Numbered from the stretch's first letter, positions 1,770 through 8,321 are shown. The stretch: 8,321 nucleotides of DNA from Ascoidea asiatica JCM 7603 (GCA_001600695.1 BCKQ01000049.1:1-8321); one strand, 5' to 3'. Program-made: numbers and translations. The notes: a model not told the origin generated them from the sequence alone.

Positions 1770-1963
1770 TTATTGAACATCAGATAATATAGAATCTGTT
1801 GGGATATTATAATTTTGATCTAGATCTAAAAAATCATTTAAATCTTTTAAATTTGATTTACTATAATGTTTTGATTCACCATCATTATTATTTTCATCAT
1901 CACTAAAATTATTTAAAGATAATTTATGTTTTAAATTATTTTCTATAACTTTTATTTCACCAC

Positions 1964-1994
<31 letters not shown>

Positions 1995-2999
1995 TTTTAA
2001 AGATAATTTTCTTGAATTTCTTCTTTTTTCAAAAGCAAATTTTATTTTATCTTCTTTTAATTTTTGATCTTTTATAGTTTCTTTTTCTTTATTTAAAATT
2101 TCATCAATTTCTTTATTATTAGTATCATTTAAAATAGAATTATTTAAATTATTATTTAAATTACTATTAGAACTATTATCGAGATTATTATCGAGATTAT
2201 TATCGAGATTATTATTATCAACTAGATTAGAAGTTGCATTTAACATTAAAGATCTTTCAGTATCATGATTATAATTATCAATTTCTTTATCATTTGTTTC
2301 ATCCCAAGTTTTTAATTTTGTTAATAATTTATATTTTTTATTATTATTATTTAAGGATATATTTTTTTGCATAATAAGAAATTTACAATGAGATATATTT
2401 CTTAAATTTTCAAATTTTTCAACATTCCATCTAAACCATTTCATTAAAAATACTCTTGCCCAAATTCCATGAGTTATTAATACTAAAATTGTTGGGAATT
2501 TATTACTATTAAATTGTCTAAAAATAGTTTCATTAAAACCTGCAACTCTATCATAAACATCAGCAGCACTTTCACCATGTGGAATTCTATAAAAAAAATG
2601 ACCATAATTTGATCTTTCTTTCCAAATTTTTTCCATTTCTATAGAATTTGATTGAAAATTACCAAAATCTTGTTCTCTCATTCTTGGTTCTTCATGAACT
2701 CTATATGGTATTTTATTATTATTATTGTTATTATTGTTATTACTTTCAGAATTGAATTCAAGACCTTTAATTATACCATCTAAAGTTTGTCTTGTTCTAA
2801 TATATGGAGAAGTATAAAATAAAATTGAATCATTTTTATTTAAAAATTTTCTTAATTTTTTACCAGCTAAAATAGCTTGTTCTTGACCTTTTTTAGTTAA
2901 AGGTACTTTATGATTTGGTATATATCTATTTACACTTTTATCACAATTACCTTCAGATTCTCCATGACGTACTAAAATTATTAATCTTGGTCTTGTCAT
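1770..2999 (-). CDS. DET1: Broad-range acid phosphatase Det1-like protein (histidine phosphatase / phosphoglycerate mutase superfamily) with an Asn-rich low-complexity C-terminal tail
   Basis: 409-aa ORF. RPRLIILVRHGES carries the catalytic RHG motif, followed by YTSPYIRTRQT, EEPRMREQDFGNFQ, YGHFFYRIPHGESAADVYDRV and a second His motif LITHG. These match Det1 as recalled, and the gene neighbours TPI1 as S. cerevisiae DET1 does. Confidence 0.9.
2174..2215. repeat. Coding 12-bp minisatellite (TATTATCGAGAT)x3.5 encoding LDNN repeats in the Det1 tail
   Basis: Perfect units at 2174, 2186 and 2198. The protein reads NNLDNNLDNNLDN. Confidence 0.9.
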
Positions 3000-3159: not shown

Positions 3160-3204
3160 AAATAATATAAATAAAGTATAAATAAAGTATAAATAAAATA
3201 TAAT

Positions 3205-3530
3205 ACGGGTACTACCTGATGGCAGCTAACTAAGATCACATGACCGGCGCAGTTAAATATATCCCCAGTCAAATATCACGGACACAGCACAAAGAAGTCA
3301 AGGACAGACCGAGAACACCCATCGAAGTGGTCTCTATTTCCACTGTGGCGTGTGATTTGCGTCCCGGTGCCATCTGACGATCCACCACCAGTGCCATGGT
3401 ACTGCTGAGACTACCCCGGAGTGATTGCCTGGTGCATGGCAGCGGATGATAACACTAACAGTAACACTAACAGTAACACTAACAGTAACACTAACAGTAA
3501 CACTACCTACCACCCACCACCAGATGATGT
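3205..3530. promoter_or_regulatory. GC-rich bidirectional promoter core for DET1/TPI1
   Basis: GC island between divergent ATGs. Contains ATCACATGAC (3235-3244, matches RTCACRTG, a Cbf1/Tye7-type E-box), further ATCAC half-sites (3275, and as GTGAT at 3352 and 3421), a partial Rap1-like ACACCCAT (3315-3322) and the near-palindrome AGTGCCATGGTACT (3390-3403). Confidence 0.7.
3450..3505. repeat. 12-bp minisatellite (TAACACTAACAG)x4.7
   Basis: Perfect units at 3450, 3462, 3474 and 3486, with a partial unit at 3498. Confidence 0.95.
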
Positions 3531-3791: not shown

Positions 3792-4541
3792 ATGTCTCGT
3801 ACTTTTTTCGTTGGTGGTAATTTTAAAATGAATGGTTCAAAAAATTCAATTGAAACAATTATTAAAAGATTAAATGAAAGTGAATTACCTAAAAATACAG
3901 AAATTGTAATTTCTCCACCTTCAATTTATTTAGATTTTTCAGTTTCAAAAAATTTAAAATTTCCAATTGTTCAAATTGCTGCACAAAATTCATTTGATAA
4001 AAAATCAGGTGCATATACTGGAGAAATTTCTGTTGAACAAATTAAAGATATTGGTGCAACTTGGGTAATTCTTGGACATTCTGAAAGAAGAACAATAATT
4101 AAAGAATCTGATGAATTTATTGCTTCAAAGACAAAATTTGCTTTAGATAATAATTTAAAAGTAATTTTATGTATTGGAGAAACTTTAGATGAAAGAAAAA
4201 TTGGTATAACTTTAAAAATTTGTTCAAGACAATTAACTGCAGTTTCTAAATTAGTTAAAGATTGGAAAAATATTGTTATTGCTTATGAACCTGTTTGGGC
4301 TATTGGTACTGGATTAGCTGCAACTCCAGATGATGCTCAAGAAACTCATAAATCAATTAGAGAATTTTTAATTAAATTAATTGGTGATGAACAAGCTTCA
4401 AAAATTAGAATTCTTTATGGTGGTTCTGTTAATGGTAAAAATGCAAATCAATTTAAAGATAAAGTTGATGTTGATGGTTTCTTAGTTGGTGGTGCATCTT
4501 TAAAACCTGAATTTATTGATATTATAAATTCAAGAAATTAA
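3792..4541 (+). CDS. TPI1: Triosephosphate isomerase (249 aa)
   Basis: [12 protein letters not shown] (catalytic Lys), ILGHSERR (catalytic His), [11 protein letters not shown] (catalytic Glu and loop 6), [14 protein letters not shown] and a yeast-type IINSRN end. The ATG at 3792 (aaaaATGtct) matches homologue N-termini. The ORF-track start at 3741 is a TTG. Confidence 0.99.
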
Positions 4542-4900
4542 TTAAGTAATTAATTAAGTAATTATTTATTTATTCACTTATTTACTATATATTAATTATT
4601 ATTTACTCTTCTTACATAATTACCATTTACAAACTTAATATGATAATGATTTACAACTTTTAAAATATTCTTTAATTGACTCTAATATATTATCCAATCA
4701 AATGATTAAGTAATAAAATTAACACTCAAGAGTAAATGAATAAAAGTAATTAAGTCTTAATCAATTTTTATTTAATCTTAAAGACAATATCAAAATAAAT
4801 ACAATATTATAACTACAATTTAAAGATAAGAATTAATTTAAAAAATAAAATATATTAAATAAAAACTATAAAAATAAGTAATTAAAATGACAATTTATAA

Positions 4901-5178
4901 CTATAATAAAACTTGTTAGTAATAATCCTTTAATAATTTACAACATTATTCATATTTATATCAATATCCATTAATAATTAATAATTAATATATACATATA
5001 CATATTTTATTTTTTTTTATAAATTTATCAGATTTAAAAAGCTCGGTAATGTTTAATCCTCATAATTTAGAAATCGGTCGAAGAAATTCAACTTGTGCAT
5101 TTGGGTCATCATGAAATTTATAATTAACTTATATATATATAGATATAAATATTGATATTTAAATCATTGTAAACTTAC
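4901..5178 (-). other. Spliceosomal intron (278 nt) of a non-coding snoRNA host transcript
   Basis: Minus strand: 5' splice site GTAAGT (5178-5173), perfect branch point TACTAAC (4921-4915), then AAGTTTTATTATAG ending in the 3' splice site TAG (4903-4901). Order and spacing are correct and the intron encloses the snoRNA. Confidence 0.8.
5021..5119 (-). ncRNA. SNR47: Box C/D snoRNA, snR47/U36 family (2'-O-methylation guide for 18S Am619 and 25S Am2220 in S. cerevisiae numbering); ends approximate
   Basis: Minus strand: C box ATGATGA (5112-5106), D' CCGA (5077-5074), C' ATGAGGA (5063-5057), D CTGA (5031-5028) and a 10-bp flanking stem (5017-5026 with 5114-5123). The D guide is complementary to conserved 18S TTAAAAAGCTCG (5034-5045) and the D' guide to conserved 25S GAAGAAATTCAAC (5080-5092). 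The D+5 rule selects an A in both targets. The rRNA sequences and family assignment are from recall. Confidence 0.92.
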
Positions 5179-5269
5179 TCTTTATTCATGGTATTGGTTA
5201 AATACTTTTAATGATAATAATAATATAAATGAATAAACTAACATAATAAAACAAAGTGAATTTGAGTCT

Positions 5270-5277
5270 CTTTTATA
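5270..5277 (-). promoter_or_regulatory. Candidate TATA box (TATAAAAG) of the snoRNA host transcript
   Basis: Perfect TATAWAWR on the minus strand, about 90 nt upstream of the 5' splice site and about 65 nt downstream of the Reb1 site. Confidence 0.6.
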
Positions 5278-5340
5278 TTCATTCTTTGATACTGCCTCAA
5301 TTGAAAAGTTTTAATTCACACACTGAAAATGGGTGACTGC

Positions 5341-5350
5341 TCCGGGTAAC
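5341..5350. promoter_or_regulatory. Reb1 binding site (TCCGGGTAAC)
   Basis: Exact match to the Reb1 consensus CCGGGTAA / TTACCCGG, unlikely by chance at this AT content, in the divergent snoRNA-host/ORC2 promoter. Confidence 0.8.
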
Positions 5351-5375
5351 AGCCAAATCTCTCGTTCTTTCTTTG

Positions 5376-5437
5376 TTTCAGGGCTTTTTCAGGGCTTTTT
5401 CAAACGTGTTTTTTTGTTTTTGTTTTCTTCCAGGGCT
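5376..5437. promoter_or_regulatory. Three CAGGGCT (Tbf1-like) motifs, two as an 11-bp tandem repeat, flanking a poly(dT)-rich tract
   Basis: TTTCAGGGCTT at 5376 and 5387, CAGGGCT at 5431. The first two read AGCCCTGA on the minus strand, one mismatch from Tbf1 ARCCCTAA. T-rich tract at 5409-5426. Confidence 0.5.
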
Positions 5438-5479
5438 CTAAAATAAAGAAGACCCAGGAATATGGTCTCAGAGAGTACA

Positions 5480-5544
5480 CAGGGGTCTACAGCAGAGGTC
5501 TACTTCAGGGGTCTACTTCAGGGGTCTACTTCAGGGGTCTGCAA
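5480..5544. repeat. 13-bp minisatellite (CAGGGGTCTACTT)x5 with four AGGGG/CCCCT cores upstream of ORC2
   Basis: Units: CAGGGGTCTACAG (5480), CAGAGGTCTACTT (5493), CAGGGGTCTACTT (5506 and 5519), CAGGGGTCTGCAA (5532). Confidence 0.93.
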
Positions 5545-5685
5545 CAACTTTGTTTACTCTTCACACTTCAAAAGTGTATAAACAAAGAAGTAAAATGGGT
5601 GATATAAACAAAGTAACAAAGTAACCAAGTAACAAGAACAGAATTGATACTAATTCTAAAATAATCATTATAAACTACAATTATA

Positions 5686-6084
5686 ATGCAGAATATTCCA
5701 TCTTTGAAATCTCCAAATAAAAGAATATCAAAAGATGAAATAATATTACCTTCAATTAATAAAATAAATAATAATAAATTAAATTCAATCTCAAGTCTAA
5801 AAAGAGGTATAATATCTCCAATAAAATCTCCATATAAAAATCAAATTAAAAGTCCATTAAAATCTCCATTAAAATCTCAAATAAATCAATTTACAAATTC
5901 AATTATACCTTTAAAAAGAGTACTTGATCAATCTGATGATGATGAAGATTTTAATGATTATGAAAATAATAATAATTATAAATTTTTAAAAAATAAAAAT
6001 TCATTTTATGAAAAATTAAAAATTGCAGGTTATGCATCTCCTGAAAAATTTGAAATTAAATATTCAAATAATATAACTAGAAAC

Positions 6085-6128
<44 letters not shown>

Positions 6129-7527
6129 TGAAATTCAAATTAATAATTTTACAAAAACTCCATTACCAAAAACTATTGAAGAAGAAGAATTTTATAATAA
6201 ATTCTTTAATAATTTAATATCTTCAAATTTTTATAAAAATAATAACAATAAAAACATTACCGCCAATATAAATAATAATAAAATTACTACCGCCAATAAT
6301 AATAAAAATAAATTTACTTATTCAAATTCAATTGAAAATAAAATCTTATTCTTAGATGGTCCAGAAGGTTATTTTGAACAAAATAAATATAAAATAAAAT
6401 TATCAAATAATTCAATCTCAGAAATTTCAAATTTAAATTATATTGAATTTAATAAATTAATAAAATTAAAAAATTTTTTAAATTTAAATTCAAAAAAAAA
6501 TTTAAATTTAATTTATTATTCTTTATTTAATCAATTTTTTTTACAATTAAATCTTGGTTATAATTTAATTTTTTATGGTATTGGTTCAAAATTAAAAATT
6601 TTAAATAAATTTATTAAAAAATTCTTAATAAATTTTATTAATTTTCCAATTTATATTATTAATGGTTATAATCCATTAATAAATTTAAAAGAAATTATTG
6701 AAAATATTATAAAAATTTTAATAAATAATAAATTTTATAAAAATTATTTTAAAAATTTAATTTTTCCAAAATCTTTAAATGATTTAATACCATTTTTAAT
6801 AAAAATTTTAAATAATTTAAAAGAAAAAGAAAAAGAAAAATCAAAATCAAAAAGTAATAATATAAATAATATAAATAATATAAAAATTTTAATTATTTTT
6901 AATAATATTGATGGTAATTCAATTAAAAATTTTAAATTTCAAAAAATTTTCTCAGAATTAATTTCAACAAATCAATTTTGGTTAATTTCAACAATTGAAA
7001 ATATAAATTCATCATTATTATGGAATTCAAATATTTTAAATAATTATAATTTTATATTTCATAATTTATCAACTTTTGAAAATTCATTAATTGAAAATTC
7101 TTTTGAAGATTTATTAACAATTGGTCAAAATGATAAAAAAATTGGTTCAAAAGGTGCAAAATATGTTTTATCTTCATTAACTATAAATTCAAGAAATTTA
7201 TATAGAGTTTTAATTTCAAATCAATTACAAAATATGGAAGATGAATTAATTTTATCTGCTAACAATAATAATAATAATAATAATAATAAAATTATAGATA
7301 GAGATAATTATTTAGGTAATATTAAACATGGTATAAGTTTTAAAATGTTATTTAATTTATGTGCTGATGAATTTATTTCAAGTAATGAAATTAATTTTAG
7401 AACAATGTTAAGAGAATTTATTGAACATAAAATGGCAAATTTAACTAAAGATTCTTTTGGTACTGAAATTGTATTTGTACCATTAACTTTAAAAGAATTA
7501 GAACAATTATTAATTGAATGTTTTTAA
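5686..7527 (+). CDS. ORC2: Origin recognition complex subunit 2 (613 aa)
   Basis: FLDGPEGYFEQ, LGYNLIFYGIGSK (the Orc2 YGxGSK motif), INGYNP, YNFIFHN, GAKYVLSSLTINSRNLYRVL and a C-terminal winged helix (FRTMLREFIEHKM). The N-terminus is disordered, with S-P-x-K sites and poly-Asn tracts. Confidence 0.95.
6085..6126 (+). repeat. Coding (AAT)n tract, poly-Asn in the Orc2 N-terminus
   Basis: 14 consecutive AAT codons after an AAC. Shorter tracts occur near 7261-7287 and in DET1. Confidence 0.95.
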
Positions 7528-7660
7528 TTGTAATAATATAGAACTGTAATAATATTTAATCGTAATGATATTTAATTGTATAAAATTTTAAAGTAAATTT
7601 TTGAAGAAAAAGAATATAAAAAGAAGATTAATAAAAGTAATAAAAGTAAGTAAATATAAT

Positions 7661-7666
7661 AAAAAA
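7661..7666 (-). terminator. RNA polymerase III oligo(dT) terminator of the tRNA gene
   Basis: T6 run on the minus strand, 16 nt past the discriminator base. Confidence 0.7.
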
Positions 7667-7682
7667 GAGACAAATATATAAA

Positions 7683-7755
7683 TGCCCCCTACCGGATTTG
7701 AACCAGTGACCTCCGCATTACGAGTGCGGCGCTGTAACCACTTAGCTAAGCGGGC
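7683..7755 (-). tRNA. tRNA-Thr (anticodon CGU), intronless, 73 nt
   Basis: Minus strand GCCCGCTTAGCTAAGTGGTTACAGCGCCGCACTCGTAATGCGGAGGTCACTGGTTCAAATCCGGTAGGGGGCA folds as a cloverleaf. Anticodon stem CCGCA/TGCGG with loop CT-CGT-AA (anticodon 7722-7720), T arm ACTGG-TTCAAAT-CCGGT, intact A and B boxes. Confidence 0.97.
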
Positions 7756-7817
7756 AAACGTCAATTTTAAAAAGGAAAGGAAAAAACATAAATCAAAGAC
7801 TGAAACACGTAAAAATA

Positions 7818-8082
7818 TGTGGCTGATGGTCTTAATTTGGAAACTTTTTTGAATAGGTCACAAACTGTAGAGATTATGCAGAGCTCCAGATGAGGAAGGT
7901 GGCGGAACTGTACACCCAGGTCTAAATCTGCAGGGCACTTTTCCTCCACAAAAACCCTGAGTAAAAAATATAAGCAGGCAGCTTAATGTAGCATAATAGA
8001 ATAAAATACAATACAAAAAGGATCCTTTATGAAAGATAACGTTACCTTCATGCAAAATAACAACCATTTTGAGACCATCACA
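7818..8082. mobile_element. Possible degenerate solo LTR or small inverted-repeat element upstream of the tRNA gene
   Basis: 265 bp with TG...CA ends, inverted repeat TGATGGTCT (7824-7832) / AGACCATCA (8072-8080), 4/5-matching flanks AAATA/GAATA and higher GC than the surroundings. It starts 62 bp upstream of a tRNA gene. Confidence 0.3.
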
Positions 8083-8321
8083 GAATATAAAAGGGACAAT
8101 TGTAATAATATATACTAAAACATACACTCACTAAATGACTGGCTGAAATAATACTCGATACAATTACTAAGTTGCTGAGTCTCAAAAATACAGTAGCACA
8201 AAAATAATGAATTACTGTATAAACTCAAGTTTAAACTCTGTACGAAGAAATCCAAGCAATTTCCAAGAATTATTGATCGAGCAATAAGAGATTTTACTAA
8301 GGCAATTCAAAAATTCAATCA

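Follow-up and report, generated by a model that had tools for sequence, protein, structure and literature searches.

Human copies of SNORD36 (U36) lie in introns of a ribosomal-protein gene, a coding host. The published targets of snR47, U36 and the plant AtU36 are Am619 of the SSU rRNA and Am2218/2220 of the LSU rRNA (S. cerevisiae numbering). In S. cerevisiae SNR47 is an independent Pol II unit, which is located next to YDR042C and has its own 70-bp NNS terminator. The C′/D′ motifs of the S. cerevisiae snoRNA are divergent and were found active by experiment (van Nues et al.), and the same work reported 'extra base-pairing' elements for snR47. A review describes most vertebrate snoRNAs as residing in introns of protein-coding host genes, with an optimum position for box C/D snoRNAs ~50 nt upstream of the branch point.

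A different arrangement has been described in the Candida clade. In C. albicans and its relatives introns house the majority of C/D snoRNAs, and a supplementary table in Donovan et al. [quoted passage not shown] Loss of such introns in the Saccharomyces lineage ('de-intronization', Mitrovich et al. 2010) is the accepted account in later papers that cite that work.

The DNA analysed here is a stretch of 8321 bases from Ascoidea asiatica JCM 7603 (GCA_001600695.1 BCKQ01000049.1:1-8321), referred to as the window. It contains genes for a His_Phos_1 protein (1770-2999, minus strand), TPI1 (3792-4541, plus strand), ORC2 (5686-7527, plus strand) and, flanking the ORC2 side, tRNA-Thr(CGU) (7682-7756, minus strand). 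The snoRNA host described below sits on the minus strand between TPI1, which is convergent with it, and ORC2, which is divergent. Among named species the closest TPI1 and ORC2 proteins were those of Ascoidea rubescens (77% and 56% identity, respectively); the identities to the Saccharomycopsis crataegensis proteins were 72% and 42%. The TIM match with the second-best bit score (P0002/L118) was set aside: it is a 413-aa TIM-domain protein from a 2.6-kb metagenome contig. The His_Phos_1 gene beside TPI1 matches the DET1-TPI1 adjacency of S. cerevisiae, and His_Phos_1 genes adjoin TPI1 also in Pachysolen and D. hansenii. Long low-complexity tracts, either poly-Asn or rich in Asn, are present in the His_Phos_1 and ORC2 proteins; in a genome of this AT content they are to be expected.

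The GC content of the window is 21.7%. Its distribution is inverted relative to most genomes: coding regions have 7-26% GC, with only 7-9% in the 6400-6900 segment of ORC2, and GC-richer, promoter-like intergenic islands (29-48%) are found at 1400-1700, 3200-3500, 5200-5700 and 7600-8100. The island upstream of TPI1 includes, at 3450-3505, a perfect tandem repeat of the 12-mer TAACACTAACAG (4.7 copies), which lies inside a spurious 107-aa ORF. The first 1400 bases (13-20% GC) open with (ATAAA)x19, contain several short tandem repeats and have no ORF of at least 60 aa; on the plus strand there are two GTAAGT motifs (145 and 747), and the segment has no TACTAAC. At the other end of the window, upstream of the tRNA gene (7760-8321, 29-36% GC), no convincing ORF and no Rfam match were found. 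A 'Plastid-ycf2' match (34 bits, gathering score 65.7) was rejected, as it is the antisense of the tRNA-Thr(CGU) gene.

Searched with Rfam models at gathering thresholds, the minus strand gave a SNORD36 (RF00049) match at 5022-5117, which scored 40.5 bits where 30 are required (E = 5e-4). The match was full-length (model positions 1-77 of 77). With permissive filters the snR47 model (RF01203) scored 52.8 bits (E = 5e-4), which is below its gathering score of 61; the shortfall is probably due to the divergent AT-rich spacers of the window snoRNA. The two models belong to the same Rfam clan, CL00051. The first-pass annotation had proposed a complete C/D snoRNA on this strand, which the full-length match bears out, and had named snR47/U36 as the family to be expected in Rfam. 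SNORD36 came out above its threshold as foreseen, RF01203 below. The assignment of the window snoRNA as an snR47 ortholog is based on synteny and targets.

As matched, the snoRNA is 96 nt long (5022-5117, minus strand, like all features that follow in this paragraph). The C box AUGAUGA (5106-5112) was read from the sequence and aligned to the C box of the model, and the D box CUGA (5028-5031) was located by model alignment and sequence. The internal boxes are degenerate. The D′ box CCGA (5074-5077) stands where the Rfam consensus has CUGA, and the C′ box AUGAGGA (5057-5063) was found by sequence reading and model alignment. The CCGA form of the D′ box is common to the window and S. crataegensis (contig L002, ~13275), A. 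rubescens having the canonical CUGA; the C′ box AUGAGGA occurs also in A. rubescens snR47. Folding of 5014-5125 revealed a terminal stem of 9 bp, in which the 5′ arm (5115-5123) pairs with the 3′ arm (5017-5025), and these arms were paired in the minimum-energy and centroid folds alike. The snoRNA has its C box near the 5′ end and its D box near the 3′ end, with the terminal stem joining both. Folded together with its flanks, the snoRNA had an energy no better than that of shuffled sequences (z = +0.29), which for this reason was not counted as evidence. The identity of the snoRNA, its boxes and its stem are established, and we consider it practically certain that the locus encodes a genuine rRNA-methylation guide snoRNA, snR47/U36.

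Since the window carries no rDNA, guide duplexes were analysed with eukaryotic metagenome rDNA contigs; the predicted 18S target of the D guide served to find them. Three contigs were inspected and the remaining fetched contigs were covered by pattern matching. The inspected contigs had LSU genes of 3.4-3.6 kb where complete, as well as short spacers, and none was taken for human. The SSU rRNA gene of metagenome contig L091 contains a group I intron (5934-6233).

The D guide CGAGCUUUUUAA (5034-5045, minus strand) forms 12 Watson-Crick pairs with the SSU rRNA of contig L014, so that the fifth nucleotide upstream of the D box faces A609, the equivalent of A619. The D′ guide GUUGAAUUUCUUC (5080-5092, minus strand) forms 13 Watson-Crick pairs and one G.U pair with the LSU rRNA of the same contig, and here the nucleotide 5 upstream of D′ is opposite A2220, the A2220 equivalent. 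On rDNA contig L031 the computed target positions were SSU 616 and LSU 2219. Both guides thus obey the fifth-nucleotide rule and fall within the 10-21 nt range on metagenome rRNA of other species, and the dual specificity at SSU 609/616 and LSU 2220/2219 on the two contigs corresponds to the published sites. In six contigs of sufficient length for both sites, the 12-mers from the two window guides were located on the same strand, and Rfam places the guide-target 12-mers in SSU and LSU rRNA. Both target regions are among the most conserved parts of rRNA. The duplexes are in this way established; two guides of 12-13 nt had been predicted, the lengths found were 12 and 13 nt, and the anticipated complementarity was perfect at the snR47/U36 sites, with the rRNA taken from metagenome contigs and not from the species itself. 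We also considered 'extra base-pairing' by the spacers of the window snoRNA. Neither the conserved spacer AUGCACAAG nor the internal spacer showed complementarity of at least 6 nt to rRNA within 80 nt of either target, and this possibility was rejected.

The snoRNA lies wholly between a 5′ splice site on one side and a branch site and 3′ splice site on the other, all on its own strand. The predicted spliceosomal intron is 278 nt long (4901-5178, minus strand), a call supported by motifs, shuffling and two relatives. It starts with the 5′ splice site GTAAGT (5173-5178) and ends with the 3′ splice site TAG (4901-4903), both found by sequence reading and pattern search. The branch site TACTAAC (4915-4921) has its branch A at 4916, 106 nt past the 3′ end of the snoRNA and 15 nt before the AG. 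An AG also occurs at 4913-4912, which, by established yeast splicing rules, would be implausible as an acceptor at a distance of 3-4 nt after the branch A. The putative non-coding exon 1 (5179-5240, minus strand) has a fixed 3′ end at 5179, where it ends in ...AATAAAGA, and a 5′ end guessed from the position of the TATA box. The putative non-coding exon 2 (4600-4900, minus strand) has a fixed 5′ end at 4900, where it starts with TTATAAAT, and a provisional 3′ end; because TPI1 converges on it, its termination must occur in the gap between the two, no further than the TPI1 3′ end (4541).

GTAWGT occurs five times in the window (5.1 expected), and TACTAAC, counted on both strands, once (0.68 expected), this copy being on the strand of the snoRNA. 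The order GTAWGT, branch heptamer, YAG was found by script in exactly one arrangement on the two strands of the 8321-base window, and this one surrounds the snoRNA. To estimate chance, the flanks of the snoRNA (150 nt on its 5′ side, 200 nt on its 3′ side) were shuffled 20,000 times with preservation of dinucleotides. The joint occurrence of 5′ splice site, TACTAAC and YAG had a frequency of 1.5e-4. Reading the sequence also reproduced every minus-strand position that had been proposed beforehand, namely the TATA box, GTAAGT, TACTAAC, TAG and the exon edges at 5179 and 4900.

In A. rubescens TPI1 is followed by snR47, which is encoded on the other strand, and then by a tRNA whose anticodon loop is of the Thr(CGU) type; in S. 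crataegensis TPI1 and snR47 have the same relative orientation, and ORC2 comes next. The linkage to ORC2 has been lost in A. rubescens. With RF01203 the two snoRNAs scored 63.3 (A. rubescens) and 65.5 bits (S. crataegensis), both above the gathering score of 61. In view of the shared synteny and of these scores, the window snoRNA is the positional ortholog of both. No snR47 was detected at the gathering threshold in the TPI1 loci of Wickerhamomyces mucosus, Pachysolen tannophilus and Debaryomyces hansenii. According to gene tables, the ORC2 loci of Pachysolen, W. ciferrii and a JGI yeast have an RPB9-like gene upstream and no snoRNA gap; Logan contig L114, which carries ORC2, includes only 200 nt upstream of the gene. 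The P. tannophilus TPI1 gene (L004, 10001-10105) has an apparent 102-nt intron right after the ATG (GTAAGT ... TGCTAAC ... CAG), which fits with a genomic locus that does not translate to the query protein.

The layout of promoter, 5′ splice site, snoRNA, branch site and 3′ splice site is the same at the three syntenic loci. The relatives differ from the window in having GTATGT, variant branch sites and shorter introns. The 5′ splice site is GTAAGT at 5178 in the window, GTATGT at 13551 in A. rubescens (contig L001) and GTATGT at 13351 in S. crataegensis (contig L002). The corresponding branch sites are TACTAAC, ATCTAAC and GACTAAC, so that those of the relatives deviate from TACTAAC by one or two mismatches, with the branch A at 4916, 13341 and 13152, respectively. 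The introns end with TAG (last base 4901), CAG (13325) and CAG (13141). In the same order, the distance from the 5′ splice site to the snoRNA is 61, 47 and 35 nt, from the snoRNA to the branch A 106, 75 and 76 nt, and from the branch A to the AG 15, 16 and 11 nt; the intron lengths are 278, 227 and 211 nt.

With a relaxed branch motif, the shuffle frequency was 2.5e-3 in each relative. There was one intron-like arrangement in 20.7 kb of A. rubescens, the one at snR47, and four in S. crataegensis, one of them at snR47. In a three-way alignment the snoRNA alone aligned: the flanks were unalignable and the exon sequences unconserved. Because the flanks do not align, the splice signals must be regarded as persisting against free drift. 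Across the three species the splice signals are kept, and the exons drift, as does the remaining intron sequence. The excess of splice signals and their conservation are thus established, and the retention of a 5′ splice site, a branch site and a 3′ splice site around snR47 of two relatives, together with the lack of a host-strand ORF, supports the intronic location that the first-pass annotation had suggested.

The host strand has a TATA box, TATAAAA (5271-5277, minus strand), 99 nt upstream of the 5′ splice site. In A. rubescens and S. crataegensis TATA-like elements are found 93 and 130 nt upstream of the 5′ splice site, respectively. A Reb1-type site, TTACCCG(G) (5343-5349, minus strand), is located in the promoter shared with ORC2 and is the sole TTACCCG in the window. 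The motif is likewise unique within 20.7 kb in A. rubescens and in S. crataegensis, and the sole copy of each locus lies 171 (window), 113 (A. rubescens) and 172 nt (S. crataegensis) upstream of the 5′ splice site. Judged from the S. cerevisiae consensus, Reb1 would bind at this motif. No Tbf1-type CCCTAA was found in the host promoter of the window. Budding-yeast start sites are ~40-120 nt downstream of the TATA box. With the TATA box only ~100 nt upstream of the 5′ splice site, the first exon must be short; by the same reasoning (99 nt against 40-120 nt) some or all starts could fall at or after the 5′ splice site.

The divergent ORC2/host promoter also contains tandem repeats of CAGGGGTCTACTT (4.7 copies, 5480-5540) and TTTCAGGGCTT (2.5 copies, 5376-5402), which have a CAGGG core in common. 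These repeats may be arrays of transcription-factor sites. These arrays and the AGCCCTG repeats noted in the window promoter do not recur in the promoters of the two relatives, A. rubescens and S. crataegensis.

The exons were inspected separately for coding capacity. Between 4542 and 5300 the host strand has no ORF longer than 20 aa, the longest being one of 20 aa in putative exon 2, and the exons are in this sense non-coding. The absence of an ORF, which had been asserted for the locus from the start, is therefore established. Putative exon 2 and the rest of the host strand in 4542-5300 matched no other Rfam family. The suspicion that protein-centred annotation overlooks such a gene also proved justified, as neither in A. 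rubescens nor in S. crataegensis has a gene been called at the orthologous position.

We weighed several other explanations of the locus. It is hardly credible that the sequence matched by the model is a non-functional pseudogene or that the match itself is a false positive. One could cite for it the modest E-value of the SNORD36 match (5e-4), the snR47 score under the gathering threshold, the degenerate D′ and C′ boxes and the unremarkable fold energy. However, nothing is missing from the two guides, the C and D boxes or the terminal stem, the pairing of the guides with rRNA extends over 12 and 13 bp and is correctly registered, the position is syntenic with bona fide snR47 in two relatives, and divergent C′/D′ motifs are active in the S. 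cerevisiae snoRNA. The intron might also belong to a protein-coding or small-peptide gene, as a 5′-UTR or coding intron. The lack of a host-strand ORF longer than 20 aa (4542-5300), the unconserved exon sequences and the identity of the next gene downstream in the window, TPI1, which is on the opposite strand at a distance of 360 nt, make this very unlikely. Many fungal intronic snoRNAs do occur in protein-coding or UTR introns (S. pombe, literature), and in S. crataegensis a DUF1749 gene is found ~1.2 kb downstream on the same strand, but in A. rubescens the 2.5 kb that follow are free of called genes.

An independent, unspliced gene of the S. cerevisiae type would start near or after 5178, and its precursor would end at an NNS-type terminator and be trimmed, the splice-like motifs being unused relics or coincidence. 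S. cerevisiae SNR47 behaves in this way, the TATA-to-5′ splice site distances of 93-130 nt permit starts close to the 5′ splice site, and de-intronization via decay of splice signals is documented in yeasts. The signals in the window, however, are perfect, undecayed consensus sequences. Also against this explanation are the recurrence of the three signals at similar spacing in two relatives with unalignable flanks, and the chance frequencies of 1.5e-4 and 2.5e-3. Moreover, the TATA box and the C box are 160 nt apart, and 5′ processing would be needed anyway. We regard an independent gene as unlikely, albeit less so than a coding host or a pseudogene. The location of snR47/U36 in the intron of a short non-coding host RNA is, in our judgement, quite probable.

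If snR47 is intronic as predicted, its production may be envisaged as follows. Pol II would transcribe the non-coding host from the divergent Reb1/TATA promoter shared with ORC2, starting upstream of 5178. The host RNA would consist of short exon 1, the 278-nt intron and exon 2, and the intron would be spliced out. The lariat would then be debranched, and exonucleases would trim the linear intron from both ends until halted by snoRNP proteins bound to the C/D kink-turn and the 9-bp stem. Debranching followed by exonuclease trimming is the established route for intronic snoRNAs. The mature snoRNA of ~96 nt would direct 2′-O-methylation of the equivalents of 18S A619 (D guide) and 25S A2220 (D′ guide).

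For yeast hosts of this kind a simple annotation rule could be an Rfam snoRNA match flanked by GTAWGT, CTAAC and YAG. The locus can serve annotation and the dating of de-intronization; it changes no concept and will not surprise a specialist. As an added data point it helps to date the loss of snoRNA introns and supports ancestral intron hosting. A more far-reaching interpretation, which we put forward tentatively and consider rather doubtful, is that the intron-hosted snR47 was kept with a near-fixed geometry (snoRNA 75-106 nt from the branch point, 11-16 nt from the branch A to the AG, short exon 1) in Ascoidea, Saccharomycopsis and the Candida clade, that selection maintains a vertebrate-type, splicing-coupled assembly of the C/D snoRNP in these yeasts, and that de-intronization took place later, on the Saccharomycetaceae branch. 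If this were true, a strictly shared ORC2/host promoter might additionally couple the snoRNA supply to a replication gene.

Compared with the described systems, the window snoRNA shares with human SNORD36 (U36) and plant AtU36 the clan CL00051 and homologous SSU and LSU target sites. The distance to the branch point, 75-106 nt in the window and the two relatives, differs from the optimum of ~50 nt given in the review. With S. cerevisiae SNR47 it has in common the targets (SSU Am619 and LSU Am2218/2220), the guide sequences and the divergent C′/D′ motifs. Unlike the S. cerevisiae gene, which is unspliced, the window copy is surrounded by consensus splice signals. The literature agrees with the first-pass annotation in treating SNR47 of S. 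cerevisiae as an unspliced, independent transcript with its own NNS terminator, in placing snoRNAs in introns of non-coding hosts in Candida (PMC5033589 lists snR47 under 'non-genic intron') and, with its account of de-intronization in the Saccharomyces lineage, in interpreting the intron-hosted form as ancestral.

The A. rubescens and S. crataegensis loci apart, the closest parallel is the snR47 of the Candida clade, which by published classification is in the intron of a non-coding host. The Candida-clade introns were determined from RNA-seq, whereas those described here were deduced from sequence and comparison; they belong to another yeast lineage and, in the window, to a TPI1/ORC2 neighbourhood. 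The arrangement as such is already published for Candida and is here extended to Ascoidea and Saccharomycopsis. Since Candida snR47 had been listed as intronic and de-intronization is the accepted account, the locus represents a known arrangement in a further lineage. In summary, snR47 is found as an independent gene in S. cerevisiae, in a non-genic intron in Candida and, by sequence evidence, in the same state in three species of a further lineage.
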